A stretch of 64,000 nucleotides of DNA, taken from positions 6,572,001 to 6,636,000 of the forward strand of contig NW_025964361.1 of the NCBI RefSeq assembly GCF_023055435.1. Direction: 5' to 3'. This DNA is from Haliotis rufescens (lineage: Eukaryota). The notes beneath the pieces were generated by a model. That model did no database searches and was not told where the DNA came from. It saw only the letters and a list, made by a program, of their open reading frames with translations. Position numbers and translations under genes: made by a program. This document shows, one piece after another, positions 1,140 through 49,040 of the stretch (position 1 is its first letter; each line of letters begins with the position of its first letter).

Positions 1140-1177
1140 AACAGACGACTTGTGTATACATTACAGAAACATTTATT
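1140..1177 (-). terminator. Putative polyadenylation site of the array gene (present in every unit)
   Basis: The minus strand reads AATAAA (1177-1172), then TGTTTCTGTAATGTATACA, then a GT/T-rich tract GTCGTCTGTTTTCTC. This is the canonical signal / CA cleavage / downstream element layout, ~720 nt past the stop codon. Confidence 0.5.
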
Positions 1178-1365
1178 CAGATGACCGAAAGTCGAAAGTA
1201 ATATGCCTCAAGGGAGATCCAAAAACGGGCCAAAATTGTATAGAAAGTATGGTCTTGTGCCATGCTAATAAGCCAAGAGGTTTGCCGAAAGGAAACTGAA
1301 AGTTGGGCCAAAACTGTGAGCCTAAAAATACGCCAAAAATACGCTAAGAGCGGGTATATGGAATG

Positions 1366-1368
<3 letters not shown>

Positions 1369-1420
<52 letters not shown>

Positions 1421-1860
1421 CATGTATGCTCGTTCATTCACTCTAACCCTCACCTCTAACATGCATCCACTCTCCCTCTCACACATACAAACATACATAC
1501 ACACATTATTATACATACATGCTCATTCACTCTCTCACACTCACACACAAATACACACACACACATGCATACAGACAGACAGACAGACATGCCGATTCAA
1601 TCTTTCATTTACTCTCACACACGCACACAATACACACACACACACACACACACAAACATACATATTCATTCAGTCTCTCTTTCTCACACACTTATACATA
1701 CACACACATGCATGTTCATTCAAACTTATATTTACTCTCACACAAACGCACACATACATACATACATACATACATACATACATACATACATACATACATA
1801 CATACATACATACATACATACATACATACATACATACACACCTGCTCATTCATTCACTCA
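1369..1860. repeat. Compound microsatellite block (CT)n-(CA)n-(CAGA)n-(CATA)n, one per unit, length-variable
   Basis: Directly visible. (CATA)21 at 1753-1836 in copy 1 versus (CATA)9 at 26272-26307 in copy 8. It is the source of the HTYI/THTH/SLSL artefact ORFs. Confidence 0.98.
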
Positions 1861-1895
1861 CTTGCACACATTCAGACATTAAAAGGATAAGGAGT

Positions 1896-2880
1896 CTAAG
1901 AGAAGATCTTCCTAAAGAAGGCAGCCGCTCTCGTCAGCGCCTTTCTAAGGGGATGAATCTCTCTGTCATCCACAAAGCTGTGGTCGTCCTCGTCCTCGTA
2001 CACCCAGTAGTCACTGTCATCGTCGTCACTTGGGGCAGGATAGTAAGCGGCGTGGTTGATGGTGACGGGGGCGGGGAGCGTCTCACCGTAGACAGGGCGG
2101 GCCCAGAACGGAGTGAAAACGCTCAGGGGGTCGGGACAACGGGAAGGGGACACAGCCAGGGAACGCTACACATCGAGGGGTGGAGGGAGGGACAAAGGAA
2201 GTCAAGTGAGACAGAAATACGGGATACTTTTGCAAAGGAAACGAATCACACTTTATTATAGGGACTGGGCAGACTTAATGTGCAACAAATCAGCTATACT
2301 AGACGGAAGAATTTATAGGGTGGGCATGTAAAACTACATACACAGTCGGACTCCTCATCCTGAGACGGCCACAAACTCACAGCCGCAGGAGTGCCATAAT
2401 AGCGAATTATGTCCTCCCGAGCTGAAAAAGAAAAACGAAAGCTAGCCTCAGTTAAATGTACGCCGACGGCTACGTTCAAAAAATCACAATTCATGACTTC
2501 TGACAGCTACAGTATGCCACTCGACCTCGGCCCTTTGACACCTCGAAGTCCAAGTGTATGTAGGGTTACGGGCTGTACTGCAAGACAACATTTAACCAAT
2601 AAAATGGGCCAAACAGCTGCCTTTCACGGAATACGGGTTATCTTACATCTGTACAACATCGCCCGACACTATAATGTACGAACAGGTTTCATCTGAGAAC
2701 CACATGTCAAGTTTACAATCTAACATTTCAAGTTATGACAATTGCAAATGGCGGCCGCCATCTTCAGTCCCGATACTGCTGCCTAACAACGACCAATTTC
2801 ACGTCTAATTTAACATCTTAATACTGTTAAGTGGAATAATTGTGATCTTAAATACCTTGAATGTGAAGCCTTGTATTCAT
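1896..2880 (-). CDS. Predicted 3-exon gene of the array unit, copy 1; unrecognised 111-aa protein
   Basis: Exons 2880-2856, 2421-2381, 2165-1896. Start CCAAGATGA; donor AAG|GTATTT (phase 1); acceptor TTTCGTTTTTCTTTTTCAG|; donor GCT|GTGAGT (phase 0); pyrimidine tract then TGTGTAG|; stop TAG. Joined CDS is 336 nt: MNTRLHIQAREDIIRYYGTPAARSLAVSPSRCPDPLSVFTPFWARPVYGETLPAPVTINHAAYYPAPSDDDDSDYWVYEDEDDHSFVDDREIHPLRKALTRAAAFFRKIFS. No transcript evidence available. Confidence 0.6.
2746..2764. promoter_or_regulatory. Palindromic back-to-back YY1-type motif in intron 1 of the array gene (every unit)
   Basis: AAATGGCGGCCGCCATCTT contains the perfect 14-bp palindrome ATGGCGGCCGCCAT (2748-2761). It matches the YY1 consensus AANATGGCG on both strands. 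Confidence 0.5.
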
Positions 2881-2899
2881 CTTGGAAGAAGACACACTT

Positions 2900-3175
2900 G
2901 GAATGATACAGCAGTGAGCGAAACGTAGAGGTCAGCGGAGCAAAAGCGATCGTTTTTCTGTTGAAAACAGAAGGGACGTCGATAACGGCAACGGTAACTA
3001 CGTTACGGAGTTCGATGAGTCAGAACGAGGCTCATCGCCAGCTTCCGGCGTGGTAAAGCCTAATGGCATTGCCAAGGGTGAAAACTGCCGGGTTTATTTC
3101 GTCTGAACACCGGTATTAAGTTGTATCTTACAACTGAAACGTTGCCTACATCAGTTCAGAGTTTGAAAAAATTGT
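2900..3175 (-). promoter_or_regulatory. Putative promoter of the array gene (every unit)
   Basis: CpG-rich, TATA-less stretch just upstream of the ATG exon. It contains TAACGG/CAACGG (MYB-type, 2983-2994), GGCAAC/GGTAAC (RFX half-site-like), TGAGTCA (AP-1, 3016-3022), CTTCCGG (ETS, 3042-3048) and TTTGAA (CHR-like, 3162-3167). Confidence 0.4.
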
Positions 3176-3976
3176 GCAGGTGAAACTGGGTGTTTTTCGT
3201 GCCTCCATTACCCGAAACAGGGTGAATTTTGTTCACTATGAGATGGACATTAACCTTAAACGTTTGCTATGCCGAATAGCGATACCATATAACGACCCTC
3301 TATTATACTAGCCTTCACAATACCTTTTACATTCGACAAACTGACACGGGCTAGCAGGCTAGTAAGAATGCAAATCTCTGATAATCCAAGTGGGATTTGG
3401 GAATTATTCCCAAGCCTACAGGGATAAAATAAAAGTTCAATGGTACTGGTATTTTCCAACGTGTGCAGCGACAGTTCTTATTTGGTTTGATTTCTAATCT
3501 GGAAACACGACGACCACAGAAAATAGCTAATAGGAGAGAAAGATAAATGACAAGCATATTGGTTTTTACTACACTAGGCCTGAGGGGCCGACCATTTCAT
3601 GTTCCTTTGGAAGGGGGAGTGGGCGACGTTGGATTTTGTATGGAGACTAGATATTTTGCAGCTACAAATGCAAAATCAGTTAATATAAACTATGAGCCTA
3701 AATAAAACATTTTTCAAAAACCCACCTTGCAACAACGTATTTTTGGTGGCCGACATGTTCTTTTTGTCCAACAGATGGAAGCATATTTAGTTTTCAATCA
3801 ACTTTGGAGACAATATATTTTTTTCTGAAAAAATCCTAGCCACCCACACACTCACAGTCAGAGAAATCCTATTGACGGTCCCATTTTGAAAACCTTGATG
3901 TGGACGTACAGGGGTAGAATTCAGACCCCTTGTATCATTTAGGTATTTTTGTAGAATGCCAGATACGAATATTACG

Positions 3977-4029
<53 letters not shown>

Positions 4030-4906
4030 TCTACTCTTGCATACAAGTGGGTGTCAATATAGGCTTTCTACTTGCGCCTGGCCTCGGCCTATGTATTAAA
4101 GCATGCCCTCTGCAATTTCTGAAGACCACGGGCCAAAAGACCAGCAGTAAGGTGATGAGACGAGTGGAATCCAATATTGACTGAGGCGAAGGGAGATCAC
4201 TCTCAATCCCTTGTCCGACTACTGCTATTAGTTGGGTGAAGTGCTCGTAATATATCCCATGTGGCGACACTTGTGTTTTAGAGAAGAAAGGCAATTCTCG
4301 ATTCGCACTCCTTTATAAAGGAAGCCACAATTATTGTTACATTAGAAACGATTAGCTATTATATTGGAATATAAAATTTATTCCAGATAACAAAGTATCA
4401 GAGAGCTGTCCTCGGAGAATATCCCGTGTCACAATTGTCGCCACATAAACATTTAGAAGTGTCTGATCTTAAGGTAACCCCACCTATTTAGAAATCTTCT
4501 GCTAAGTGCAGATCATGAAATTGGGACACAGCAGCACAGCAATATAGAGGCAGCATTTACTTTTTAACAATATCCATATGAATTTATGTCTCATGTTCGG
4601 AAATCTTGGGATTTGGCCAATATTGCGATGCTGCTGTCGCCCATATATTATTAGCTGTAAGGAAGAAACACTGTAGAGAAAACAGACGACTTGTGTATAC
4701 ATTACAGAAACATTTATTCAGATGACCGAAAGTCGAAAGTAATATGCCTCAAGGGAGATCCAAAAACGGGCCAAAATTGTATAGAAAGTATGGTCTTGTG
4801 CCATGCTAATAAGCCAAGAGGTTTGCCGAAAGGAAACTGAAAGTTGGGCCAAAACTGTGAGCCTAAAAATACGCCAAAAATACGCTAAGAGCGGGTATAT
4901 GGAATG

Positions 4907-4961
<55 letters not shown>

Positions 4962-5436
4962 CATGTATGCTCGTTCATTCACTCTAACCCTCACCTCTAA
5001 CATGCATCCACTCTCCCTCTCACACATACAAACATACATACACACATTATTATACATACATGCTCATTCACTCTCTCACACTCACACACAAATACACACA
5101 CACACATGCATACAGACAGACAGACAGACATGCCGATTCAATCTTTCATTTACTCTCACACACGCACACAATACACACACACACACACACACACAAACAT
5201 ACATATTCATTCAGTCTCTCTTTCTCACACACTTATACATACACACACATGCATGTTCATTCAAACTTATATTTACTCTCACACAAACGCACACATACAT
5301 ACATACATACATACATACATACATACATACATACATACATACATACATACATACATACATACATACATACATACATACACACCTGCTCATTCATTCACTC
5401 ACTTGCACACATTCAGACATTAAAAGGATAAGGAGT

Positions 5437-6421
5437 CTAAGAGAAGATCTTCCTAAAGAAGGCAGCCGCTCTCGTCAGCGCCTTTCTAAGGGGATGAATC
5501 TCTCTGTCATCCACAAAGCTGTGGTCGTCCTCGTCCTCGTACACCCAGTAGTCACTGTCATCGTCGTCACTTGGGGCAGGATAGTAAGCGGCGTGGTTGA
5601 TGGTGACGGGGGCGGGGAGCGTCTCACCGTAGACAGGGCGGGCCCAGAACGGAGTGAAAACGCTCAGGGGGTCGGGACAACGGGAAGGGGACACAGCCAG
5701 GGAACGCTACACATCGAGGGGTGGAGGGAGGGACAAAGGAAGTCAAGTGAGACAGAAATACGGGATACTTTTGCAAAGGAAACGAATCACACTTTATTAT
5801 AGGGACTGGGCAGACTTAATGTGCAACAAATCAGCTATACTAGACGGAAGAATTTATAGGGTGGGCATGTAAAACTACATACACAGTCGGACTCCTCATC
5901 CTGAGACGGCCACAAACTCACAGCCGCAGGAGTGCCATAATAGCGAATTATGTCCTCCCGAGCTGAAAAAGAAAAACGAAAGCTAGCCTCAGTTAAATGT
6001 ACGCCGACGGCTACGTTCAAAAAATCACAATTCATGACTTCTGACAGCTACAGTATGCCACTCGACCTCGGCCCTTTGACACCTCGAAGTCCAAGTGTAT
6101 GTAGGGTTACGGGCTGTACTGCAAGACAACATTTAACCAATAAAATGGGCCAAACAGCTGCCTTTCACGGAATACGGGTTATCTTACATCTGTACAACAT
6201 CGCCCGACACTATAATGTACGAACAGGTTTCATCTGAGAACCACATGTCAAGTTTACAATCTAACATTTTCAGTTATGACAATTGCAAATGGCGGCCGCC
6301 ATCTTCAGTCCCGATAATGCTGCCTAACAACGACCAATTTCACGTCTAATTTAACATCTTAATACTGTTAAGTGGAATAATTGTGATCTTAAATACCTTG
6401 AATGTGAAGCCTTGTATTCAT
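5437..6421 (-). CDS. Array gene copy 2 (111 aa)
   Basis: Exons 6421-6397, 5962-5922, 5706-5437; same splice signals and protein as copy 1. Confidence 0.6.
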
Positions 6422-8415
6422 CTTGGAAGAAGACACACTTGGAATGATACAGCAGTGAGCGAAACGTAGAGGTCAGCGGAGCAAAAGCGATCGTTTTTCT
6501 GTTGAAAACAGAAGGGACGTCGATAACGGCAACGGTAACTACGTTACGGAGTTCGATGAGTCAGAACGAGGCTCATCGCCAGCTTCCGGCGTGGTAAAGC
6601 CTAATGGCATTGCCAAGGGTGAAAACTGCCGGGTTTATTTCGTCTGAACACCGGTATTAAGTTGTATCTTGCAACTGAAACGTTGCCTACATCAGTTCAG
6701 AGTTTGAAAAAATTGTGCAGGTGAAACTGGGTGTTTTTCGTGCCTCCATTACCCGAAACAGGGTTAATTTTGTTCACTATGAGATGGACATTAACCTTAA
6801 ACGTTTGCTATGCCGAATAGCGATACCACATAACGACCCTCTATTATACTAGCCTTCACAATACCTTTTACATTCGACAAACTGACACGGGCTAGCAGGC
6901 TAGTAAGAATGCACATCTCTGATAATCCAAGTGGGATTTGGGAATTATTCCCAAGCCTACAGGGATAAAATAAAAGTTCAATGGTACTGGTATTTTCCAA
7001 CGTGTGCAGCGACAGTTCTTATTTGGTTTGATTTCTAATCTGGAAACACGACGACCACAGAAAATAGCTAATAGGAGAGAAAGATAAATGACAAGCATAT
7101 TGGTTTTTACTACACTAGGCCTGAGGGGCCGACCATTTCATGTCCCTTTGGAAGGGGGAGTGGGCGACGTTGGATTTTGTATGGAGACTAGATATTTTGC
7201 AGCTACAAATGCAAAATCAGTTAATATAAACTATGAGCCTAAATAAAACATTTTTCAAAAATCCACCTTGCAACAACGTATTTTTGGTGGCCGACATGTT
7301 CTTTTTGTCCAACAGATGGAAGCATATTTAGTTTTCAATCAACTTTGGAGACAATATATTTTTTTCTGAAAAAATCCTAGCCACCCACACACTCACAGTC
7401 AGAGAAATCCTATTGACCGTCCCATTTTGAAAACCTTGATGTGGACGTACAGGGGTAGAATTCAGACCCCTTGTATCATTTAGGTATTTTTGTAGAATGC
7501 CAGATACGAATATTACGTCATATATATATATATATTAATCTACTCTTGCATACAAGTGGGTGTCAATATAGGCTTTCTACTTGCGCCTGGCCTCGGCCTA
7601 TGTATAAAAGCATGCCCTCTGCAATTTCTGAAGACCACGGGCCAAAAGACCAGCAGTGAGGTGATGAGACGAGTGGAATCCAATATTGACTGAGGCGAAG
7701 GGAGATCACTCTCAATCCCTTGTCCGACTACTGCTATTAGTTGGGTGAAGTGCTCGTAATATATCCCATGTGGCGACACTTGTGTTTTAGAGAAGAAAGG
7801 CAATTCTCGATTCGCACTCCTTTATAAAGGAAGCCACAATTATTGTTACATTAGAAACGATTAGCTATTATATTGGAATATAAAATTTATTCCAGATAAC
7901 AAAGTATCAGAGAGCTGTCCTCGGAGAATATCCCGTGTCACAATTGTCGCCACATAAACATTTAGAAGTGTCTGATCTTAAGGTAACCCCACCTATTTAG
8001 AAATCTTCTGCTTAGTGCAGATCATGAAATTGGGACACAGCAGCACAGCAATATAGAGGCAGCATTCACTTTTTAACAATATCCATATGAATTTATGTCT
8101 CATGTTCGGAAATCTTGGGATTTGGCCAATATTGCGATGCTGCTGTCGCCCATATATTATTAGCTGTAAGGAAGACACACTGTAGAGAAAACAGACGACT
8201 TGTGTATACATTACAGAAACATTTATTCAGATGACCGAAAGTCGAAAGTAATATGCCTCAAGGGAGATCCAAAAACAGGCCAAAATTGTATAGAAAGTAT
8301 GGTCTTGTGCCATGCTAATGAGCCAAGAGGTTTGCCGAAAGGAAGCTGAAAGTTGGGCCAAAACTGTGAGCCTAAAAATACGCCAAAAATACGCTAAGAG
8401 CGGGTATATGGAATG

Positions 8416-8454
<39 letters not shown>

Positions 8455-8669
8455 CATGTATGCTCGTTCATTCACTCTAACCCTCACCTCTAACATGCAT
8501 CCACTCTCCCTCTCACACATACAAACATACATACACACATTATTATACATACATGTTCATTCACTCTCTCACACTCACACACAAATACACACACATACAT
8601 GCATACAGACAGACAGACAGACAGACATGCCGATTCAATCTTTCATTTACTCTCACACACGCACACAAT

Positions 8670-8700
<31 letters not shown>

Positions 8701-8925
8701 TACATATTCATTCAGTCTCTCTTTCTCACACACTTATACATACACACACATGCATGTTCATTCAAACTTATATTTACTCTCACACAAACGCACACATACA
8801 TACATACATACATACATACATACATACATACATACATACATACATACATACATACATACATACATACACACCTGCTCATTCATTTACTCACTTGCACACA
8901 TTCAGACATTAAAAGGATAAGGAGT

Positions 8926-9910
8926 CTAAGAGAAGATCTTCCTAAAGAAGGCAGCCGCTCTCGTCAGCGCCTTTCTAAGGGGATGAATCTCTCTGTCATC
9001 CACAAAGCTGTGGTCGTCCTCGTCCTCGTACACCCAGTAGTCACTGTCATCGTCGTCACTTGGGGCAGGATAGTAAGCGGCGTGGTTGATGGTGACGGGG
9101 GCGGGGAGCGTCTCACCGTAGACAGGGCGGGCCCAGAACGGAGTGAAAACGCTCAGGGGGTCGGGACAACGGGAAGGGGACACAGCCAGGGAACGCTACA
9201 CATCGAGGGGTGGAGGGAGGGACAAAGGAAGTCAAGTGAGACAGAAATACGGGATACTTTTGCAAAGGAAACGAATCACACTTTATTATAGGGACTGGGC
9301 AGACTTAATGTGCAACAAATCAGCTATACTAGACGGAAGAATTTATAGGGTGGGCATGTAAAACTACATACACAGTCGGACTCCTCATCCTGAGACGGCC
9401 ACAAACTCACAGCCGCAGGAGTGCCATAATAGCGAATTATGTCCTCCCGAGCTGAAAAAGAAAAACGAAAGCTAGCCTCAGTTAAATGTACGCCGACGGC
9501 TACGTTAAAAAAATCACAATTCATGACTTCTGACAGCTACAGTATGCCACTCGACCTCGGCCCTTTGACACCTCGAAGTCCAAGTGTATGTAGGGTTACG
9601 GGCTGTACTGCAAGACAACATTTAACCAATAAAATGGGCCAAACAGCTGCCTTTCACGGAATACGGGTTATCTTACATCTGTACAACATCGCCCGACACT
9701 ATAATGTACGAACAGGTTTCATCTGAGAACCACATGTCAAGTTTACAATCTAACATTTTCAGTTATGACAATTGCAAATGGCGGCCGCCATCTTCAGTCC
9801 CGATACTGCTGCCTAACAACGACCAATTTCACGTCTAATTTAACATCTTAATACTGTTAAGTGGAATAATTGTGATCTTAAATACCTTGAATGTGAAGCC
9901 TTGTATTCAT
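8926..9910 (-). CDS. Array gene copy 3 (111 aa)
   Basis: Exons 9910-9886, 9451-9411, 9195-8926. Confidence 0.6.
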
Positions 9911-11012: not shown

Positions 11013-11052
<40 letters not shown>

Positions 11053-11932: not shown

Positions 11933-11971
<39 letters not shown>

Positions 11972-12186
11972 CATGTATGCTCGTTCATTCACTCTAACCC
12001 TCACCTCTAACATGCATCCACTCTCCCTCTCACACATACAAACATACATACACACATTATTATACATACATGTTCATTCACTCTCTCACACTCACACACA
12101 AATACACACACATACATGCATACAGACAGACAGACAGACAGACATGCCGATTCAATCTTTCATTTACTCTCACACACGCACACAAT

Positions 12187-12217
<31 letters not shown>

Positions 12218-12438
12218 TACATATTCATTCAGTCTCTCTTTCTCACACACTTATACATACACACACATGCATGTTCATTCAAACTTATATTTACTCTCAC
12301 ACAAACGCACACATACATACATACATACATACATACATACATACATACATACATACATACATACATACATACATACATACACACCTGCTCATTCATTTAC
12401 TCACTTGCACACATTCAGACATTAAAAGGATAAGGAGT

Positions 12439-13423
12439 CTAAGAGAAGATCTTCCTAAAGAAGGCAGCCGCTCTCGTCAGCGCCTTTCTAAGGGGATGAA
12501 TCTCTCTGTCATCCACAAAGCTGTGGTCGTCCTCGTCCTCGTACACCCAGTAGTCACTGTCATCGTCGTCACTTGGGGCAGGATAGTAAGCGGCGTGGTT
12601 GATGGTGACGGGGGCGGGGAGCGTCTCACCGTAGACAGGGCGGGCCCAGAACGGAGTGAAAACGCTCAGGGGGTCGGGACAACGGGAAGGGGACACAGCC
12701 AGGGAACGCTACACATCGAGGGGTGGAGGGAGGGACAAAGGAAGTCAAGTGAGACAGAAATACGGGATACTTTTGCAAAGGAAACGAATCACACTTTATT
12801 ATAGGGACTGGGCAGACTTAATGTGCAACAAATCAGCTATACTAGACGGAAGAATTTATAGGGTGGGCATGTAAAACTACATACACAGTCGGACTCCTCA
12901 TCCTGAGACGGCCACAAACTCACAGCCGCAGGAGTGCCATAATAGCGAATTATGTCCTCCCGAGCTGAAAAAGAAAAACGAAAGCTAGCCTCAGTTAAAT
13001 GTACGCCGACGGCTACGTTAAAAAAATCACAATTCATGACTTCTGACAGCTACAGTATGCCACTCGACCTCGGCCCTTTGACACCTCGAAGTCCAAGTGT
13101 ATGTAGGGTTACGGGCTGTACTGCAAGACAACATTTAACCAATAAAATGGGCCAAACAGCTGCCTTTCACGGAATACAGGTTATCTTACATCTGTACAAC
13201 ATCGCCCGACACTATAATGTACGAACAGGTTTCATCTGAGAACCACATGTCAAGTTTACAATCTAACATTTTCAGTTATGACAATTGCAAATGGCGGCCG
13301 CCATCTTCAGTCCCGATACTGCTGCCTAACAACGACCAATTTCACGTCTAATTTAACATCTTAATACTGTTAAGTGGAATAATTGTGATCTTAAATACCT
13401 TGAATGTGAAGCCTTGTATTCAT
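12439..13423 (-). CDS. Array gene copy 4 (111 aa)
   Basis: Exons 13423-13399, 12964-12924, 12708-12439. Confidence 0.6.
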
Positions 13424-14525: not shown

Positions 14526-14565
<40 letters not shown>

Positions 14566-15445: not shown

Positions 15446-15486
<41 letters not shown>

Positions 15487-15701: not shown

Positions 15702-15732
<31 letters not shown>

Positions 15733-15957: not shown

Positions 15958-16869
15958 CTAAGAGAAGATCTTCCTAAAGAAGGCAGCCGCTCTCGTCAGT
16001 CACTGTCATCGTCGTCACTTGGGGCAGGATAGTAAGCGGCGTGGTTGATGGTGACGGGGGCGGGGAGCGTCTCACCGTAGACAGGGCGGGCCCAGAACGG
16101 AGTGAAAACGCTCAGGGGGTCGGGACAACGGGAAGGGGACACAGCCAGGGAACGCTACACATCGAGGGGTGGAGGGAGGGACAAAGGAAGTCAAGTGAGA
16201 CAGAAATACGGGATACTTTTGCAAAGGAAACGAATCACACTTTATTATAGGGACTGGGCAGACTTAATGTGCAACAAATCAGCTATACTAGACGGAAGAA
16301 TTTATAGGGTGGGCATGTAAAACTACATACACAGTCGGACTCCTCATCCTGAGACGGCCACAAACTCACAGCCGCAGGAGTGCCATAATAGCGAATTATG
16401 TCCTCCCGAGCTGAAAAAGAAAAACGAAAGCTAGCCTCAGTTAAATGTACGCCGACGGCTACGTTCAAAAAATCACAATTCATGACTTCTGACAGCTACA
16501 GTATGCCACTCGACCTCGGCCCTTTGACACCTCGAAGTCCAAGTGTATGTAGGGTTACGGGCTGTACTGCAAGACAACATTTAACCAATAAAATGGGCCA
16601 AACAGCTGCCTTTCACGGAATACGGGTTATCTTACATCTGTACAACATCGCCCGACACTATAATGTACGAACAGGTTTCATCTGAGAACCACATGTCAAG
16701 TTTACAATCTAACATTTTCAGTTATGACAATTGCAAATGGCGGCCGCCATCTTCAGTCCCGATACTGCTGCCTAACAACGACCAATTTCACGTCTAATTT
16801 AACATCTTAATACTGTTAAGTGGAATAATTGTGATCTTAAATACCTTGAATGTGAAGCCTTGTATTCAT
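15958..16869 (-). pseudogene. Array gene copy 5, truncated by a 73-bp deletion in exon 3 (74-aa product ending ...PSDDDDSD*)
   Basis: The plus strand reads CGTCAG|TCACTG at 15999/16000, lacking the equivalent of 1938-2010. On the minus strand this gives GAC AGT GAC TGA, with the stop at 15998-15996. Exons 16869-16845, 16410-16370, 16154-15996. Confidence 0.55.
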
Positions 16870-19375: not shown

Positions 19376-20360
19376 CTAAGAGAAGATCTTCCTAAAGAAG
19401 GCAGCCGCTCTCGTCAGCGCCTTTCTAAGGGGATGAATCTCTCTGTCATCCACAAAGCTGTGGTCGTCCTCGTCCTCGTACACCCAGTAGTCACTGTCAT
19501 CGTCGTCACTTGGGGCAGGATAGTAAGCGGCGTGGTTGATGGTGACGGGGGCGGGGAGCGTCTCACCGTAGACAGGGCGGGCCCAGAACGGAGTGAAAAC
19601 GCTCAGGGGGTCGGGACAACGGGAAGGGGACACAGCCAGGGAACGCTACACATCGAGGGGTGGAGGGAGGGACAAAGGAAGTCAAGTGAGACAGAAATAC
19701 GGGATACTTTTGCAAAGAAAACGAATCACACTTTATTATAGGGACTGGGCAGACTTAATGTGCAACAAATCAGCTATACTAGACGGAAGAATTTATAGGG
19801 TGGGCATGTAAAACTACATACACAGTCGGACTCCTCATCCTGAGACGGCCACAAACTCACAGCCGCAGGAGTGCCATAATAGCGAATTATGTCCTCCCGA
19901 GCTGAAAAAGAAAAACGAAAGCTAGCCTCAGTTAAATGTACGCCGACGGCTACGTTCAAAAAATCACAATTCATGACTTCTGACAGCTACAGTATGCCAC
20001 TCGACCTCGGCCCTTTGACACCTCGAAGTCCAAGTGTATGTAGGGTTACGGGCTGTACTGCAAGACAACATTTAACCAATAAAATGGGCCAAACAGCTGC
20101 CTTTCACGGAATACGGGTTATCTTACATCTGTACAACATCGCCCGACACTATAATGTACGAACAGGTTTCATCTGAGAACCACATGTCAAGTTTACAATC
20201 TAACATTTCAAGTTATGACAATTGCAAATGGCGGCCGCCATCTTCAGTCCCGATACTGCTGCCTAACAACGACCAATTTCACGTCTAATTTAACATCTTA
20301 ATACTGTTAAGTGGAATAATTGTGATCTTAAATACCTTGAATGTGAAGCCTTGTATTCAT
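19376..20360 (-). CDS. Array gene copy 6 (111 aa)
   Basis: Exons 20360-20336, 19901-19861, 19645-19376. Confidence 0.6.
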
Positions 20361-22731: not shown

Positions 22732-22879
22732 NNNNNNNNNNNNNNNNNNNNNNNNNNNNNNNNNNNNNNNNNNNNNNNNNNNNNNNNNNNNNNNNNNNNN
22801 NNNNNNNNNNNNNNNNNNNNNNNNNNNNNNNNNNNNNNNNNNNNNNNNNNNNNNNNNNNNNNNNNNNNNNNNNNNNNNN
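22732..22879. other. Assembly gap (148 N) at the (CATA)n position of unit 7
   Basis: Run of N; both flanks are collinear with the unit. Confidence 0.99.
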
Positions 22880-22918: not shown

Positions 22919-23903
22919 CTAAGAGAAGATCTTCCTAAAGAAGGCAGCAGCTCTCGTCAGCGCCTTTCTAAGGGGATGAATCTCTCTGTCATCCACAAAG
23001 CTGTGGTCGTCCTCGTCCTCGTACACCCAGTAGTCACTGTCATCGTCGTCACTTGGGGCAGGATAGTAAGCGGCGTGGTTGATGGTGACGGGGGCGGGGA
23101 GCGTCTCACCGTAGACAGGGCGGGCCCAGAACGGAGTGAAAACGCTCAGGGGGTCGGGACAACGGGAAGGGGACACAGCCAGGGAACGCTACACATCGAG
23201 GGGTGGAGGGAGGGACAAAGGAAGTCAAGTGAGACAGAAATACGGGATACTTTTGCAAAGGAAACGAATCACACTTTATTATAGGGACTGGGCAGACTTA
23301 ATGTGCAACAAATCAGCTATACTAGACGGAAGAATTTATAGGGTGGGCATGTAAAACTACATACACAGTCGGACTCCTCATCCTGAGACGGCCACAAACT
23401 CACAGCCGCAGGAGTGCCATAATAGCGAATTATGTCCTCCCGAGCTGAAAAAGAAAAACGAAAGCTAGCCTCAGTTAAATGTACGCCGACGGCTACGTTC
23501 AAAAAATCACAATTCATGACTTCTGACAGCTACAGTATGCCACTCGACCTCGGCCCTTTGACACCTCGAAGTCCAAGTGTATGTAGGGTTACGGGCTGTA
23601 CTGCAAGACAACATTTAACCAATAAAATGGGCCAAACAGCTGCCTTTCACGGAATACGGGTTATCTTACATCTGTACAACATCGCCCGACACTATAATGT
23701 ACGAACAGGTTTCATCTGAGAACCACATGTCAAGTTTACAATCTAACATTTTCAGTTATGACAATTGCAAATGGCGGCCGCCATCTTCAGTCCCGATAAT
23801 GCTGCCTAACAACGACCAATTTCACGTCTAATTTAACATCTTAATACTGTTAAGTGGAATAATTGTGATCTTAAATACCTTGAATGTGAAGCCTTGTATT
23901 CAT
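22919..23903 (-). CDS. Array gene copy 7 (111 aa)
   Basis: Exons 23903-23879, 23444-23404, 23188-22919; one synonymous change (GCG>GCT, Ala) at 22949. Confidence 0.6.
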
Positions 23904-26366: not shown

Positions 26367-27351
26367 CTAAGAGAAGATCTTCCTAAAGAAGGCAGCCGCT
26401 CTCGTCAGCGCCTTTCTAAGGGGATGAATCTCTCTGTCATCCACAAAGCTGTGGTCGTCCTCGTCCTCGTACACCCAGTAGTCACTGTCATCGTCGTCAC
26501 TTGGGGCAGGATAGTAAGCGGCGTGGTTGATGGTGACGGGGGCGGGGAGCGTCTCACCGTAGACAGGGCGGGCCCAGAACGGAGTGAAAACGCTCAGGGG
26601 GTCGGGACAACGGGAAGGGGACACAGCCAGGGAACGCTACACATCGAGGGGTGGAGGGAGGGACAAAGGAAGTCAAGTGAGACAGAAATACGGGATACTT
26701 TTGCAAAGGAAACGAATCACACTTTATTATAGGGACTGGGCAGACTTAATGTGCAACAAATCAGCTATACTAGACGGAAGAATTTATAGGGTGGGCATGT
26801 AAAACTACATACACAGTCGGACTCCTCATCCTGAGACGGCCACAAACTCACAGCCGCAGGAGTGCCATAATAGCGAATTATGTCCTCCCGAGCTGAAAAA
26901 GAAAAACGAAAGCTAGCCTCAGTTAAATGTACGCCGACGGCTACGTTCAAAAAATCACAATTCATGACTTCTGACAGCTACAGTATGCCACTCGACCTCG
27001 GCCCTTTGACACCTCGAAGTCCAAGTGTATGTAGGGTTACGGGCTGTACTGCAAGACAACATTTAACCAATAAAATGGGCCAAACAGCTGCCTTTCACGG
27101 AATACGGGTTATCTTACATCTGTACAACATCGCCCGACACTATAATGTACGAACAGGTTTCATCTGAGAACCACATGTCAAGTTTACAATCTAACATTTT
27201 CAGTTATGACAATTGCAAATGGCGGCCGCCATCTTCAGTCCCGATACTGCTGCCTAACAACGACCAATTTCACGTCTAATTTAACATCTTAATACTGTTA
27301 AGTGGAATAATTGTGATCTTAAATACCTTGAATGTGAAGCCTTGTATTCAT
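26367..27351 (-). CDS. Array gene copy 8 (111 aa)
   Basis: Exons 27351-27327, 26892-26852, 26636-26367. Confidence 0.6.
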
Positions 27352-29830: not shown

Positions 29831-30815
29831 CTAAGAGAAGATCTTCCTAAAGAAGGCAGCCGCTCTCGTCAGCGCCTTTCTAAGGGGATGAATCTCTCTG
29901 TCATCCACAAAGCTGTGGTCGTCCTCGTCCTCGTACACCCAGTAGTCACTGTCATCGTCGTCACTTGGGGCAGGATAGTAAGCGGCGTGGTTGATGGTGA
30001 CGGGGGCGGGGAGCGTCTCACCGTAGACAGGGCGGGCCCAGAACGGAGTGAAAACGCTCAGGGGGTCGGGACAACGGGAAGGGGACACAGCCAGGGAACG
30101 CTACACATCGAGGGGTGGAGGGAGGGACAAAGGAAGTCAAGTGAGACAGAAATACGGGATACTTTTGCAAAGGAAACGAATCACACTTTATTATAGGGAC
30201 TGGGCAGACTTAATGTGCAACAAATCAGCTATACTAGACGGAAGAATTTATAGGGTGGGCATGTAAAACTACATACACAGTCGGACTCCTCATCCTGAGA
30301 CGGCCACAAACTCACAGCCGCAGGAGTGCCATAATAGCGAATTATGTCCTCCCGAGCTGAAAAAGAAAAACGAAAGCTAGCCTCAGTTAAATGTACGCCG
30401 ACGGCTACGTTCAAAAAATCACAATTCATGACTTCTGACAGCTACAGTATGCCACTCGACCTCGGCCCTTTGACACCTCGAAGTCCAAGTGTATGTAGGG
30501 TTACGGGCTGTACTGCAAGACAACATTTAACCAATAAAATGGGCCAAACAGCTGCCTTTCACGGAATACGGGTTATCTTACATCTGTACAACATCGCCCG
30601 ACACTATAATGTACGAACAGGTTTCATCTGAGAACCACATGTCAAGTTTACAATCTAACATTTTCAGTTATGACAATTGCAAATGGCGGCCGCCATCTTC
30701 AGTCCCGATAATGCTGCCTAACAACGACCAATTTCACGTCTAATTTAACATCTTAATACTGTTAAGTGGAATAATTGTGATCTTAAATACCTTGAATGTG
30801 AAGCCTTGTATTCAT
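29831..30815 (-). CDS. Array gene copy 9 (111 aa)
   Basis: Exons 30815-30791, 30356-30316, 30100-29831. Confidence 0.6.
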
Positions 30816-33290: not shown

Positions 33291-34275
33291 CTAAGAGAAG
33301 ATCTTCCTAAAGAAGGCAGCCGCTCTCGTCAGCGCCTTTCTAAGGGGATGAATCTCTCTGTCATCCACAAAGCTGTGGTCGTCCTCGTCCTCGTACACCC
33401 AGTAGTCACTGTCATCGTCGTCACTTGGGGCAGGATAGTAAGCGGCGTGGTTGATGGTGACGGGGGCGGGGAGCGTCTCACCGTAGACAGGGCGGGCCCA
33501 GAACGGAGTGAAAACGCTCAGGGGGTCGGGACAACGGGAAGGGGACACAGCCAGGGAACGCTACACATCGAGGGGTGGAGGGAGGGACAAAGGAAGTCAA
33601 GTGAGACAGAAATACGGGATACTTTTGCAAAGGAAACGAATCACACTTTATTATAGGGACTGGGCAGACTTAATGTGCAACAAATCAGCTATACTAGACG
33701 GAAGAATTTATAGGGTGGGCATGTAAAACTACATACACAGTCGGACTCCTCATCCTGAGACGGCCACAAACTCACAGCCGCAGGAGTGCCATAATAGCGA
33801 ATTATGTCCTCCCGAGCTGAAAAAGAAAAACGAAAGCTAGCCTCAGTTAAATGTACGCCGACGGCTACGTTCAAAAAATCACAATTCATGACTTCTGACA
33901 GCTACAGTATGCCACTCGACCTCGGCCCTTTGACACCTCGAAGTCCAAGTGTATGTAGGGTTACGGGCTGTACTGCAAGACAACATTTAACCAATAAAAT
34001 GGGCCAAACAGCTGCCTTTCACGGAATACGGGTTATCTTACATCTGTACAACATCGCCCGACACTATAATGTACGAACAGGTTTCATCTGAGAACCACAT
34101 GTCAAGTTTACAATCTAACATTTTCAGTTATGACAATTGCAAATGGCGGCCGCCATCTTCAGTCCCGATACTGCTGCCTAACAACGACCAATTTCACGTC
34201 TAATTTAACATCTTAATACTGTTAAGTGGAATAATTGTGATCTTAAATACCTTGAATGTGAAGCCTTGTATTCAT
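33291..34275 (-). CDS. Array gene copy 10 (111 aa)
   Basis: Exons 34275-34251, 33816-33776, 33560-33291. Confidence 0.6.
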
Positions 34276-36270: not shown

Positions 36271-36309
<39 letters not shown>

Positions 36310-36750: not shown

Positions 36751-37735
36751 CTAAGAGAAGATCTTCCTAAAGAAGGCAGCCGCTCTCGTCAGCGCCTTTC
36801 TAAGGGGATGAATCTCTCTGTCATCCACAAAGCTGTGGTCGTCCTCGTCCTCGTACACCCAGTAGTCACTGTCATCGTCGTCACTTGGGGCAGGATAGTA
36901 AGCGGCGTGGTTGATGGTGACGGGGGCGGGGAGCGTCTCACCGTAGACAGGGCGGGCCCAGAACGGAGTGAAAACGCTCAGGGGGTCGGGACAACGGGAA
37001 GGGGACACAGCCAGGGAACGCTACACATCGAGGGGTGGAGGGAGGGACAAAGGAAGTCAAGTGAGACAGAAATACGGGATACTTTTGCAAAGGAAACGAA
37101 TCACACTTTATTATAGGGACTGGGCAGACTTAATGTGCAACAAATCAGCTATACTAGACGGAAGAATTTATAGGGTGGGCATGTAAAACTACATACACAG
37201 TCGGACTCCTCATCCTGAGACGGCCACAAACTCACAGCCGCAGGAGTGCCATAATAGCGAATTATGTCCTCCCGAGCTGAAAAAGAAAAACGAAAGCTAG
37301 CCTCAGTTAAATGTACGCCGACGGCTACGTTCAAAAAATCACAATTCATGACTTCTGACAGCTACAGTATGCCACTCGACCTCGGCCCTTTGACACCTCG
37401 AAGTCCAAGTGTATGTAGGGTTACGGGCTGTACTGCAAGACAACATTTAACCAATAAAATGGGCCAAACAGCTGCCTTTCACGGAATACGGGTTATCTTA
37501 CATCTGTACAACATCGCCCGACACTATAATGTACGAACAGGTTTCATCTGAGAACCACATGTCAAGTTTACAATCTAACATTTTCAGTTATGACAATTGC
37601 AAATGGCGGCCGCCATCTTCAGTCCCGATAATGCTGCCTAACAACGACCAATTTCACGTCTAATTTAACATCTTAATACTGTTAAGTGGAATAATTGTGA
37701 TCTTAAATACCTTGAATGTGAAGCCTTGTATTCAT
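36751..37735 (-). CDS. Array gene copy 11 (111 aa)
   Basis: Exons 37735-37711, 37276-37236, 37020-36751. Confidence 0.6.
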
Positions 37736-40202: not shown

Positions 40203-41187
40203 CTAAGAGAAGATCTTCCTAAAGAAGGCAGCCGCTCTCGTCAGCGCCTTTCTAAGGGGATGAATCTCTCTGTCATCCACAAAGCTGTGGTCGTCCTCGT
40301 CCTCGTACACCCAGTAGTCACTGTCATCGTCGTCACTTGGGGCAGGATAGTAAGCGGCGTGGTTGATGGTGACGGGGGCGGGGAGCGTCTCACCGTAGAC
40401 AGGGCGGGCCCAGAACGGAGTGAAAACGCTCAGGGGGTCGGGACAACGGGAAGGGGACACAGCCAGGGAACGCTACACATCGAGGGGTGGAGGGAGGGAC
40501 AAAGGAAGTCAAGTGAGACAGAAATACGGGATACTTTTGCAAAGGAAACGAATCACACTTTATTATAGGGACTGGGCAGACTTAATGTGCAACAAATCAG
40601 CTATACTAGACGGAAGAATTTATAGGGTGGGCATGTAAAACTACATACACAGTCGGACTCCTCATCCTGAGACGGCCACAAACTCACAGCCGCAGGAGTG
40701 CCATAATAGCGAATTATGTCCTCCCGAGCTGAAAAAGAAAAACGAAAGCTAGCCTCAGTTAAATGTACGCCGACGGCTACGTTCAAAAAATCACAATTCA
40801 TGACTTCTGACAGCTACAGTATGCCACTCGACCTCGGCCCTTTGACACCTCGAAGTCCAAGTGTATGTAGGGTTACGGGCTGTACTGCAAGACAACATTT
40901 AACCAATAAAATGGGCCAAACAGCTGCCTTTCACGGAATACGGGTTATCTTACATCTGTACAACATCGCCCGACACTATAATGTACGAACAGGTTTCATC
41001 TGAGAACCACATGTCAAGTTTACAATCTAACATTTTCAGTTATGACAATTGCAAATGGCGGCCGCCATCTTCAGTCCCGATAATGCTGCCTAACAACGAC
41101 CAATTTCACGTCTAATTTAACATCTTAATACTGTTAAGTGGAATAATTGTGATCTTAAATACCTTGAATGTGAAGCCTTGTATTCAT
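40203..41187 (-). CDS. Array gene copy 12 (111 aa)
   Basis: Exons 41187-41163, 40728-40688, 40472-40203. Confidence 0.6.
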
Positions 41188-43182: not shown

Positions 43183-43225
<43 letters not shown>

Positions 43226-43819
43226 CATGTATGCTCGTTCATTCACTCTAACCCTCACCTCTAACATGCATCCACTCTCCCTCTCACACATACAAACATA
43301 CATACATACACACATTATTATACATACATGCTCATTCACTCTCTCACACTCACACACAAATACACACACATACATGCATACAGACAGACAGACATGCCGA
43401 TTCAATCTTTCATTTACTCTCACACACGCACACAATACACACACACACACACACACAAACATACATATTCATTCAGTCTCTCTTTCTCACACACTTATAC
43501 ATATACATACACACACATGCATGTTCATTCAAACTTATATTTACTCACACACAAATACACAAACATACATGCATACAGACAGACATGCCGATTCAATCTT
43601 TCATTTACTCTCACACACGCACACAATACACACACACACACACACACAAACATACATATTCATTCAGTCTCTCTTTCTCACACACATATACATACACACA
43701 CATGCATGTTCATTCAAACTTATATTTACTCTCACACATACATACATACATACATACATACACACCTGCTCATTCATTCACTCACTTGCACACATTCAGA
43801 CATTAAAAGGATAAGGAGT

Positions 43820-44804
43820 CTAAGAGAAGATCTTCCTAAAGAAGGCAGCCGCTCTCGTCAGCGCCTTTCTAAGGGGATGAATCTCTCTGCCATCCACAAA
43901 GCTGTGGTCGTCCTCGTCCTCGTACACCCAGTAGTCACTGTCATCGTCGTCACTTGGGGCAGGATAGTAAGCGGCGTGGTTGATGGTGACGGGGGCGGGG
44001 AGCGTCTCACCGTAGACAGGGCGGGCCCAGAACGGAGTGAAAACGCTCAGGGGGTCGGGACAACGGGAAGGGGACACAGCCAGGGAACGCTACACATCGA
44101 GGGGTGGAGGGAGGGACAAAGGAAGTCAAGTGAGACAGAAATACGGGATACTTTTGCAAAGAAAACGAATCACACTTTATTATAGGGACTGGGCAGACTT
44201 AATGTGCAACAAATCAGCTATACTAGACGGAAGAATTTATAGGGTGGGCATGTAAAACTACATACACAGTCGGACTCCTCATCCTGAGACGGCCACAAAC
44301 TCACAGCCGCAGGAGTGCCATAATAGCGAATTATGTCCTCCCGAGCTGAAAAAGAAAAACGAAAGCTAGCCTCAGTTAAATGTACGCCGACGGCTACGTT
44401 CAAAAAAACACAATTCATGACTTCTGACAGCTACAGTATGCCACTCGACCTCGGCCCTTTGACACCTCGAAGTCCAAGTGTATGTAGGGTTACGGGCTGT
44501 ACTGCAAGACGACATTTAACCAATAAAATGGGCCAAACAGCTGCCTTTCACGGAATACGGGTTATCTTACATCTGTTTAACATCGCCCGACACTATAATG
44601 TACGAACAGGTTTCATCTGAGAACCACATGTCAAGTTTACAATCTAACATTTTCAGTTATGACAATTGCAAATGGCGGCCGCCATCTTCAGTCCCGATAC
44701 TGCTGCCTTACAACGACCAATTTCACGTCTAATTTAACATCTTAATACTGTTAAGTGGAATAATTATGATCTTAAATACCTTGAATGTGAAGCCTTGTAT
44801 TCAT
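43820..44804 (-). CDS. Array gene copy 13 (111 aa, one D>G change)
   Basis: Exons 44804-44780, 44345-44305, 44089-43820; FVDDRE becomes FVDGRE via the SNP at 43890. Confidence 0.6.
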
Positions 44805-47436
44805 CTTGGAAGAAGACACACTTGGAATGATACAGCAGTGAGCGAAACGTAGAGGTCTGCGGAGCAAAAGCGATCGTTTTTCTGTTGAAAACAGAAGGGA
44901 CGTCGATAACGGCAACGGTAACTACGTTACGGAGTTCGATGAGTCAGAACGAGGCTCATCGCCAGCTTCCGGCGTGGTAAAGCCTAATGACATTGCCAAG
45001 GGTGAAAACTGCCGGGTTTATTTCGTCTGAACACCGGTATTAAGTTGTATCTTACCACTGAAACGTTGCCTACATCAGTTCAGAGTTTGAAAAAATTGTG
45101 CAGGTGAAACTGGGTGTTTTTCGTCCCTCCATTACCCGAAACAGGGTGAATTTTGTTCACTTTGATATGGACATTAACCTTAAACGTTTGCTAGGCCGCA
45201 TAGCGATACCATATAACGACCCTCTATTATACTAGCCTTCACAATACCTTTTACATTCGACAAACTGACACGGGCTAGCAGGCTAGTAAGAATGCACATC
45301 TCTGATAATCCAAGTGGGATTTGGGAATTATTCCCAAGCCTACAGGGATAAAATAAAAGTTCAATGGTACTGGTATTTTCCAACGTGTGCAGCGACAGTT
45401 CTTATTTGGTTTGATTTCTAATCTGGAAACACGACGACAAAAGAAAATAGCTAATAGGAGAGAAAGATAAATGACAAGCATATTGGTTTTTACTACACTA
45501 GGCCTGAGGGGCCGACCATTTCATGTTCCTTTGGATGGGGGAGTGGGCGACGTTGGATTTTGTATGGAGACTAGATATTTTTCAGCTACAAATGCAAAAT
45601 CAGTTAATATAAACTATGAGCCTAAATAAAACATTTTTCAAAAACCCACCTTGCAACAACGTATTTTTGGTGGCCGACATGTTCTTTTTGTCCAACAGAT
45701 GGAAGCATATTTAGTTTTCAATCAACTTTGGAGACAATATATTTTTTTCTGAAAAAATCCTAGCCACCCACACACTCACAGTCAGAGAAATCCTATTGAC
45801 CGTCCCATTTTGAAAACCTTGATGTGGACGTACAGGGGTAGAATTCAGACCCCTTGTATCATTTAGGTATTTTTGTAGAATGCCAGATACGAATATTACG
45901 TCATATATATATATTAATCTACTCTTGCATACAAGTGGGTGTCAATATAGGCTTTCTACTTGCGCCTGGCCTCGGCCTATGTATAAAAGCATGCCCTCTG
46001 CAATTTCTGAAGACCACGGGCCAAAAGACCAGCAGTGAGGTGATGAGACGAGTGGAATCCAATATTGACTGAGGCGAAGGGAGATCACTCTCAATCCCTT
46101 GTCCGACTACTGCTATTAGTTGGGTGAAGTGCTCGTAATATATCCCATGTGGCGACACTTGTGTTTTAGAGAAGAAAGGCAATTCTCGATTCGCACTCCT
46201 TTATAAAGGAAGCCACAATTATTGTTACATTAGAAACGATTAGCTATTATATTGGAATATAAAATTTATTCCAGATAACAAAATATCAGAGAGCTGTCCT
46301 CGGAGAATATCCCGTGTCACAATTGTCGCCACATAAACATTTAGAAGTGTCTGATCTTAAGGTAACCCTACCTATTTAGAAATCTTCTGCTAAGTGCAGA
46401 TCATGAAATTGGGACACAGCAGCACAGCAATATAGAGGCAGCATTCACTTTTTAACAATATCCATATGAATTTATGTCTCATGTTCGGAAATCTTGGGAT
46501 TTGGCCAATATTGCGATGCTGCTGTCGCCCATATATTATTAGCTGTAAGGAAGAAACACTGTAGAGAAAACAGACGACTTGTGTATACATTACAGAAACA
46601 TTTATTCAGATGACCGAAAGTCGAAAGTAATATGCCTCAAGGGAGATCCAAAAACTGGCAAAATTGTATAGAAAGTATGGCCTTGTGCCATGCTAATAAG
46701 CCAAGAGGTTTGCCGAAAGGAAACTGAAAGTTGGGCCAAGACTGTGAGCCTAAAAATACGCCAAAAATACGCTAAGAGCGGGTATATGGAATGGTAGTCT
46801 CTCTCTCTCTCTCTCTCTCTCTCATACATGTATGCTCGTTCATTCACTCTAACCCTCACCTCTAACATACATACACTCTCCCTCTCACACATACAAACAT
46901 ACATACACACATTATTATACATACATGCTCATTCACTCTCTCACACTCACACACAAATACACACACATACATGCATACAGACAGACAGACAGACAGACAT
47001 GCCGATTCAATCTTTCATTTACTCTCACACACGCACACAATACACACACAAACATACATATTCATTCAGTCTCTCTTTCTCACACACATATACATATACA
47101 TACACACACATGCATGTTCATTCAAACTTATATTTACTCACACACAAATACACACACATACATGCATACAGACAGACAGACAGACATGCCGATTCAATCT
47201 TTCATTTACTCACACACGCACACAATACACACACACACACACAAACATACATATTCATTCAGTCTCTCTTTCTCACACACATATACATACACACACATGC
47301 ATGTTCATTCAAACTTATATTTACTCTCACACAAACGCACACATACATACATACATACATACATACATACATACATACACACCTGCTCATTCATTCACTC
47401 ACTTGCACACATTCAGACATTAAAAGGATAAGGAGT

Positions 47437-48421
47437 CTAAGAGAAGATCTTCCTAAAGAAGGCAGCCGCTCTCGTCAGCGCCTTTCTAAGGGGATGAATC
47501 TCTCTGTCATCCACAAAGCTGTGGTCGTCCTCGTCCTCGTACACCCAGTAGTCACTGTCATCGTCGTCACTTGGGGCAGGATAGTAAGCGGCGTGGTTGA
47601 TGGTGACGGGGGCGGGGAGCGTCTCACCGTAGACAGGGCGGGCCCAGAACGGAGTGAAAACGCTCAGGGGGTCGGGACAACGGGAAGGGGACACAGCCAG
47701 GGAACGCTACACATCGAGGGGTGGAGGGAGGGACAAAGGAAGTCAAGTGAGACAGAAATACGGGATACTTTTGCAAAGAAAACGAATCACACTTTATTAT
47801 AGGGACTGGGCAGACTTAATGTGCAACAAATCAGCTATACTAGACGGAAGAATTTATAGGGTGGGCATGTAAAACTACATACACAGTCGGACTCCTCATC
47901 CTGAGACGGCCACAAACTCACAGCCGCAGGAGTGCCATAATAGCGAATTATGTCCTCCCGAGCTGAAAAAGAAAAACGAAAGCTAGCCTCAGTTAAATGT
48001 ACGCCGACGGCTACGTTCAAAAAATTACAATTCATGACTTCTGACAGCTACAGTATGTCACTCGAACTCGGCCCTTTGACACCTCGAAGTCCAAGTGTAT
48101 GTAGGGTTACAGGCTGTGCTGCAAGACGACATTCAACCAATAAAATGGGCCAAACAGTTGCTTTTCACGTAATACAGGTTATCTTACATATGTACAACAT
48201 CGCCCGACACTATAATGTACGAACAGGTTTCATCTGAGCACCACATGTCAAGTTTACAATCTAAAATGTTCAGTTAAGACAATTGCAAATGGCGGCCGCC
48301 ATCTTCAGTCCCGATACTGCTGCCTAACAACGACCAATTTCACGTCTAATTTAGCATGTTAATACTGTGAAGTGGAATAATTGTGATCTTAAATACCTTG
48401 AATGTGAAGCCTTGTATTCAT
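47437..48421 (-). CDS. Array gene copy 14 (terminal copy; CDS identical to consensus, non-coding parts diverged)
   Basis: Exons 48421-48397, 47962-47922, 47706-47437; all splice sites intact. Confidence 0.6.
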
Positions 48422-49040
48422 CTTGGAAGAAGACACACTTCGAAAGATACAGCAGTGAGCGAAACGTGGATATAACCGGAGCAAAAGCGATCGTTTTTCT
48501 GTTGGAAACAGAAGGGGACGTCGGTACCGGCAACGGTAACTACGTTACGGAGTTCGAGGACTCAGAACGAGGCGCCTAGGCTAAACGTATGGCCGCCTTT
48601 AGGGTCATTTGTTTTGTCTTCTTCTTGTTTTTTCTTGAAATTTCAAGACACGAAGCTGAAATTTCAAAATGTAAAGTTTGGAGTTTGAAAAAATTGTTTT
48701 GGTGTTTTTCGTTCCTCCATAACTCGGAACACTGTGAACGTGAATTTCATTCACTTTGATACGGATCATCAATGGTAAACGTTAACCTCACATATTTGCT
48801 ACCCCGAATATCGATACCGTATGGAATCTATATAAGAACAACCTAAAATCTTAAATTCTACTGGCCTTCGGAATACCTAAATTGTTTCATTCCACAAAGT
48901 GAAACGGTGATAGCGGTTAGATCACTGATGATCAAAGTAGGATTTAGCAATTATTCCTTTGTCTAACTTAAAGAGAAAATCTTTCAACGAGCAAGTCGGT
49001 GACTTAAAATGATGAAACAGGGACTGGGTCATTTATTATA

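Follow-up and report, generated by a model that had tools for sequence, protein, structure and literature searches.

The window analysed here, a stretch of 64,000 nucleotides (nt) of the Haliotis rufescens genome (contig NW_025964361.1, hereafter C583, positions 6,572,001 to 6,636,000), contains 14 head-to-tail units on its minus strand, each of which carries a promoter, three exons and the signal AATAAA. These units are very probably self-contained genes and form a tandem array of a small, abalone-only protein-coding family, the copies of which would be kept for dosage. A sequence-only reading of the same DNA had proposed that the apparent 3.5-kb satellite is an amplified array of a three-exon protein-coding gene; this proposal is now supported by the open frames of the copies, by low ratios of nonsynonymous to synonymous substitution (dN/dS) and by the joint of intron 1 in RNA-like contigs.

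Each landmark motif is present once per unit, 14 times in the window, with a period of 3,446–3,617 bp. All motifs described in the sequence-only reading were recovered in this way on the minus strand, namely CCAAGATG with the 25-nt exon ending in AAG/GTATTT (the slash indicating the splice junction) in every unit, the succession of TTTTTCTTTTTCAG, 41 nt and GTGAGT in every unit of the window, and in each unit the 270-nt terminal exon followed by AATAAA and a T/GT-rich stretch. Joined as then proposed, the exons form a 336-nt open frame of 111 codons in 13 of the 14 window copies (12 copies being identical and copy 13 having a single D>G replacement), the broken copy being copy 5. The open reading frame (ORF) of 85 residues beginning with MSPSRC does start, as had been noticed, from a GTG codon at position 2153, 12 nt inside the acceptor, and the promoter-like stretch is indeed CpG-rich: the observed/expected ratio of CpG peaks at 1.46–1.51 over 3120–2821, just upstream of and across the ATG, and is mostly 0.4–0.95 elsewhere in the unit. 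The earlier count of at least 13 intact copies thus stands for the window (13 of 14) but falls short of the whole array, which has 35 units, and of the genome, which has at least 335 copies.

These larger numbers derive from searches of the whole assembly. On C583, 35 occurrences of the exon 2 motif between 6,497,779 and 6,619,908 define an array of 35 units, with 14 inside the window and 21 to its left, and 22 more belong to a second array of the same contig at 4.64–4.73 Mb, which is 96% identical. Genome-wide, the form of this motif found in the window, hereafter type A, occurs 86 times (C583, C1 and C201), and a 26-nt degenerate motif of exon 3 has 335 genomic occurrences versus 0 for its reversed control, a figure that represents a lower bound for the genome. 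A six-frame protein search of the genome returned 405 candidates, 150 of which were scored; all 150 have an open exon 3 of 88–113 amino acids (aa) without stops and 76–100% amino acid identity. Arrays with periods of about 3.4–5.3 kb lie on contigs C1, C112, C146, C201, C223 and C583, to which the exon 3 motif adds C79 and C101, so that the copies are distributed over at least eight contigs and the family extends over about 1.4 Mb in total, or 0.1% of the genome. Two subtypes can be distinguished: type A, that of the window (about 86 copies in units of 3.4–3.6 kb), and type B, with units of 4.3–5.3 kb. The copies that are not type A are mostly type B, which is closest to proteins of H. asinina and reaches 87% identity with one of them over 75 aligned residues.

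On C1, at 32.58–32.64 Mb, type A units are arranged in two opposite blocks, with 4 units on the plus strand followed by 12 on the minus strand. In the 4.7-Mb array of C583, a type A copy (4700328–4700594) has +1 and −1 indels about 60 nt apart in exon 3, which alter about 19 residues without closing the frame; either one frameshift compensates for the other or the assembly is wrong at this place.

The conservation of the units follows the proposed exons. When type A is compared with type B, only three blocks can be aligned, corresponding to positions 3000–2739 (promoter and exon 1), 2439–2331 (exon 2) and 2199–1816 (exon 3) of the window, the rest of the unit being unrelated between the two subtypes. 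Nine paralogous copies from other arrays, aligned exon by exon, show invariant splice sites and coding indels that are multiples of 3. The dN/dS calculated over exons 2 and 3 is 0.1–0.2 in most of the 36 pairwise comparisons (range 0.02–0.44), with dS up to 0.8; on these substitution patterns, the protein is under purifying selection. A tandem layout, units rich in microsatellites and the lack of a known protein domain would also be expected of a non-coding satellite or a transposon-derived repeat, with an open frame due to chance or left as a relic. We consider this scarcely credible in view of the 150 open copies out of 150 scored (at 76–100% identity), the low dN/dS, the indels in multiples of 3, the canonical splice joint in RNA-like contigs and the restriction of conservation between subtypes to promoter and exons; moreover, three other ORFs of the unit had no match in Pfam, although no transposon consensus library was searched. 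An array of RNA genes (5S, small nuclear RNA or transfer RNA) with a passenger ORF is likewise unsupported, for Rfam at its gathering threshold gave 0 matches and ARAGORN found 0 transfer RNAs in the 64-kb window.

Copies are near-identical within an array and diverged between arrays. Copies 1–13 of the window differ by 0.07–0.64% from the array consensus, and other arrays are 96%, about 91–93%, about 87% or about 78% identical to that of the window. In the terminal copy 14, none of the 302 exon columns compared is changed, versus 47 of 1,325 columns of promoter, introns and untranslated region (UTR), the divergence of this copy amounting to 19/169 in the promoter, 19/434 in intron 1 and 74/285 in the upstream region. 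Because the copies at the edge are the most diverged, we infer that the arrays would grow and remain uniform through unequal crossing-over or gene conversion.

Evidence for transcription was sought in sequencing runs in the form of assembled contigs, which were guessed to be RNA from small contig totals typical of transcriptomes and are hereafter called RNA-like. In fourteen runs, from six studies and five organisms, 27–66% of the words sampled from exon 3 and the 3'UTR are present. Four runs were mapped onto window positions 1860–3960, the 3'UTR being excluded for its microsatellites; no reads of the small-RNA run X21 fell on this stretch, a result that carries no weight either way. Contigs of X1 and X4, two runs from two species and two studies, show the joint 2421^2856, which leaves out 434 nt that begin with GT and end with AG on the minus strand; the junction 2856^2421 predicted for intron 1 from the genomic letters is thereby seen exactly in RNA-like contigs of two species. 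Across the same interval, no joint of intron 2 is listed among the contigs of the mapped runs. The depth of contigs nevertheless follows the gene model, exons being 10–200 times deeper than intron 1 and intergenic parts. In X4, most of exon 3 has a depth of 2,233–5,306, the bin of the stop codon about 590, exon 2 700 and exon 1 80, compared with 111–225 in intron 2, 25 in intron 1 and 6–25 upstream, and depth changes in steps at the borders of intron 2 (from 5305 to 111 on one side; 700 versus 224 on the other). In X1, exons have depths of 1,100–2,800, intron 1 mostly 80–170 and intergenic parts 25–150. Unspliced contigs span 2091–2390 or 2220–2390.

Within intron 2 (window 2216–2331), 114 nt with the non-canonical ends AT..TA are missing from one contig of X1 (depth 338); this probably reflects a paralogous copy with a deletion and not splicing.

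The structure of the gene is described here for unit 1, the features of which all lie on the minus strand. The conserved core promoter (2881..3070) covers about 190 bp upstream of the ATG, is CpG-rich and includes the conserved blocks GCCGGAA, GCCTCGTTCTGA, GTAACGTAGTTACCGTTG and ACGTCCC; it is the only upstream stretch that can be aligned between type A and type B arrays. Contig depth climbs at about 2925–2990, which suggests that transcription starts near there. The coding part of exon 1 (2856..2880, 25 nt) runs from the ATG at 2880 to the donor AAG/GTATTT, both invariant in the nine aligned paralogues, and is followed by the 434 nt of intron 1 (2422..2855) that are skipped exactly in the RNA-like contigs. 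Exon 2 in its conserved form (2342..2421) has 80 nt between the acceptor TTTTTCAG and the donor TGT/GTATGT. Intron 2 (2166..2341, 176 nt) is apparently retained in part, and neither intron can be aligned between type A and type B arrays. The coding part of exon 3 (1896..2165) comprises 89 codons plus TAG and matches XP_048243251.1 at 100%. The putative 3'UTR (1155..1895) includes (TGTA)n, (GT)n and (GA)n runs and the signal AATAAA at 1177–1172 with a T/GT-rich stretch downstream; of the words sampled from 1180–2165, a fraction of up to 0.66 is present in RNA-like runs, which exceeds the possible share of exon 3, and the region around AATAAA is 80–81% conserved in the C1 array.

The form of exon 2 given above departs from the sequence-only reading, in which this exon had 41 nt, ended at 2381 before GTGAGT and led to a product of 111 aa. 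Proteins of RefSeq and of H. asinina have 12–13 extra residues (VSLWPSQDEESDC) between the exons 2 and 3 of that model, from which we place the donor at TGT/GTATGT, with 2342 as the last base of the exon. The extension of 36–39 nt is in frame among the paralogues, with four substitutions, three of them synonymous, and one deletion of a whole codon; the GTATGT donor is invariant and similarity stops a few bases beyond it, the conserved block of exon 2 covering 2439–2331 of the window. By these alignments, the conserved product is the form of 120–124 aa found in RefSeq models, H. asinina proteins and paralogues, and has 124 aa in the array of the window. The shorter model does have points in its favour, as GTGAGT is a strong donor consensus with which all type A units of the window give an in-frame junction, and no read evidence decides between the two donors; type A could use GTGAGT as a second donor of its own, and the 111-aa form could be an alternative product confined to that subtype. 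However, the site reads GCGAGT in all five diverged type B copies inspected and CTGAGT in two type A copies on C1, and the additional 12–13 residues are present in RefSeq models of three species. We therefore consider it improbable that the 41-nt exon with donor GCT/GTGAGT provides the main product. The exon calls made from sequence only were nearly right, one splice site having to be corrected by comparison with paralogues.

The gene is not hidden, as had been thought, for RefSeq already lists units of this kind as uncharacterized proteins in H. rufescens, H. cracherodii and H. asinina. Similarity searches used the translation of exon 3 together with the database records P0009 and P0002, and the joined 111-aa frame was checked by script. 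At the protein level, exon 3 has 100% identity to XP_048243251.1, which RefSeq describes as uncharacterized protein LOC125376035 isoform X1 of H. rufescens, and LOC125376031 and LOC125376049 are further RefSeq models of the same genes. Copy 13 matches the 124-aa RefSeq isoform XP_048243245.1 / XP_048243252.1 (P0009), residues 36–124 of which correspond to its exon 3 and residues 10–35 to the extended exon 2. The main protein cluster consists of 26 RefSeq proteins of 124, 130, 140 and 145 aa from H. rufescens and H. cracherodii, and a second cluster of 13 H. asinina proteins of 120–122 aa with 76–81% identity. These entries represent the same genes, but they are automatic predictions without name, function or description of a family; they record neither how large the family is (at least 335 copies and two subtypes) nor its selection. 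Literature searches for Haliotis tandem repeats, satellites and gene families, for the LOC identifiers and for peptides found no publication on the family.

The proposal of a lineage-specific orphan is borne out by a profile search of 1.84 billion representative proteins, which found relatives only in Haliotis. It returned three entries: the H. asinina cluster, a 655-aa model of H. cracherodii and, as a weak match, a repeat protein assembled from SRA data. No domain is recognisable either. Pfam had no match for exon 3 at E values up to 10, nor for the whole protein (RefSeq isoforms) at E values up to 0.1; a profile search of the PDB gave nothing significant (best E value 0.29), and scores in the ESM Atlas were 0.77–0.78, below chance level. 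The 655-aa model (XP_071118469.1, P0029) has nine type B exon-3-like segments in a row and is most likely a chimera spliced across neighbouring units of an array, which implies that the annotation of these arrays is unreliable. In H. rufescens, about 250 type B copies have an open exon 3 (e.g., at C112:39.70–39.91 Mb and C146:3.53–3.63 Mb), and no H. rufescens type B protein of 66–210 aa was found in the protein database; these copies may have escaped annotation or been absorbed into long chimeric models.

The repeat protein derived from SRA (P0030, 622 aa) has nine repeats of about 69 aa and shares the motifs AA-SL[WF]..EE and PL..FTPFW.[FR]P with the abalone family in the same order. Its profile E value of 1e-9 is inflated by the repeats and the hhalign probability is only 22%, so that we leave it outside the family; the resemblance is due either to chance or to distant kinship in another animal.

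The product of 124 aa has a mass of 14.2 kDa and an isoelectric point of 4.8. A hydropathy scan indicated no signal peptide or membrane segment, there being no hydrophobic segment (the highest Kyte-Doolittle mean over 19 residues is 0.4). Charge is unevenly distributed along the sequence, with a net value of −11 in residues 81–105 and of +5 in the last 19 residues, the last 18 having a hydrophobic moment of 0.61. AlphaFold2, run with the family alignment, gave a mean predicted local distance difference test (pLDDT) of 55, a predicted template modelling score (pTM) of 0.16 and a sole helix at residues 107–123. The protein is thus acidic and predicted to be disordered, with a basic amphipathic helix at its C-terminus. 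Our guess is that it would bind a partner or a membrane via this helix and its aromatic-acidic motifs.

The family can be compared with known systems of tandem genes. Coding macrosatellites and ampliconic arrays include the 3.3-kb D4Z4 repeat with DUX4, the 4.7-kb RS447 repeat with USP17, and TSPY. The abalone arrays resemble them in having head-to-tail units of kilobase size, each with a complete ORF, that are near-identical within an array, and differ from them in that each unit combines three apparently spliced exons with a conserved promoter of its own, that almost all copies are intact and under purifying selection, and that they occupy many array sites and encode no known domain. Arrays amplified for dosage, such as those of fish antifreeze protein genes and sea-urchin early histone genes, are thought to supply much product; they share with the abalone family the tens to hundreds of intact, near-identical units of a small gene, whereas in abalone the need for dosage is argued from analogy. 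On this analogy, many copies would be retained because a large amount of transcript is needed, and dosage would be the reason for the copy number. Abalone also have the reproductive proteins lysin and sp18, which are secreted, single-copy and under positive selection. The present protein is similarly restricted to one lineage, but it has no signal peptide, is encoded by multiple copies and is under purifying selection; database searches returned only the abalone family and no similarity to lysin or sp18. The absence of a hydrophobic segment and dN/dS values mostly of 0.1–0.2 led us to reject a secreted fast evolver of this kind.

The reading of the units as genes kept for dosage has to be weighed against several observations and rivals. 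The near-identity within arrays could stem from recent amplification and not from ongoing homogenisation, and we infer, rather than observe, both that dosage explains the copy number and that the helix binds. The runs are only guessed to be RNA and, being contigs, carry no strand, transcript ends or level of expression. Contigs that keep intron 2 are also fairly deep, at 20–50% of exon depth in X1, and since no joint of this intron is listed, its junction rests on depth steps, RefSeq models and conservation, not on reads. This retention, together with the low coverage through intergenic parts and the long repetitive 3'UTR, would fit the possibility that the transcript or the array itself is functional, as a long non-coding RNA, a source of small RNAs or a chromatin element, with the protein being incidental. 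Yet synonymous changes are in excess and indels come in multiples of 3, as expected of a translated sequence, and the non-exonic parts are not conserved between subtypes, which makes such a function very unlikely.

Germline, immune and conflict genes had been named as candidate roles in the sequence-only reading. A more serious rival is amplification by genetic conflict between a germline driver and its suppressor, in which types A and B would be co-amplified antagonists comparable to Stellate/Su(Ste) or Slx/Sly. Amplified architectures with two subtypes are common for conflict genes, and the abalone family resembles these systems in being lineage-restricted and massively amplified in tandem, with hundreds of copies, two related subtypes that each occupy several arrays, and pairs of inverted arrays on C1. 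It differs from them in its low dN/dS and in lacking fast evolution of the protein: values mostly of 0.1–0.2 disfavour an arms race, and purifying selection together with the closeness of type B to its H. asinina counterpart also argues against conflict, which we regard as unlikely. To our knowledge, no sex chromosomes or drive systems are known in abalone. A broader and bolder reading, which we put forward with little confidence, is that selection keeps the family of at least 335 copies either for a germline conflict between types A and B in a broadcast spawner or for bulk production of a disordered acidic protein, the cationic helix of which would possibly bind membranes; if true, both the protein family and its cellular role would be new.

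The copies form one of the largest sets of intact, selected, tandem protein-coding genes in the H. rufescens genome, and they illustrate how an apparent satellite can be a gene array. Annotation often collapses, chimerises or skips families of this kind. For abalone biology and aquaculture, the family is of interest because it may serve a lineage-specific function with high expression, and it is a likely source of copy-number variation between individual abalone.

The remaining copies of the window, given from ATG to stop codon and all on the minus strand, lie at 5437..6421 (copy 2), 8926..9910 (copy 3), 12439..13423 (copy 4), 15958..16869 (copy 5), 19376..20360 (copy 6), 22919..23903 (copy 7), 26367..27351 (copy 8), 29831..30815 (copy 9), 33291..34275 (copy 10), 36751..37735 (copy 11), 40203..41187 (copy 12), 43820..44804 (copy 13) and 47437..48421 (copy 14). 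All are intact except copy 5, in which about 73 nt of exon 3 are deleted (junction near 15998–15999) with a premature stop after ...SDDDDSD; copy 13 has the single D>G replacement already mentioned and the terminal copy 14 is diverged in its non-coding parts. Copy 7 is intact in its coding part and has an assembly gap (22732..22879) in the (TGTA)n microsatellite of its 3'UTR, 40 nt past the stop codon in the reading direction of the gene. Both sides of this gap align in register with neighbouring units (299/300 and 276–278/278 positions), and the gap touches no coding sequence or splice site. The (TGTA)n microsatellite varies from 76 to 263 nt between copies, accounting for part of the variation in unit length (3,434–3,617 bp), and (GT)n, (GA)n and (TA)n runs occupy the same zones (1440–1860 and 3975–4030 of unit 1, with equivalents elsewhere).

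The array ends near window position 48,950, beyond copy 14. In the flank from 48.9 to 64 kb, where two neighbouring housekeeping genes had been proposed, the largest ORF does not exceed 206 aa, and four ORFs searched against Pfam had no match. By eye, two diverged copies resembling a short interspersed element (SINE) can be recognised on the minus strand beyond the array edge, at about 49080–49300 and 49870–50080, which have in common the blocks ...taacgc.gcac...ctata.gac.g.ctgtaaataatc... and gggatacaatgacatgca.

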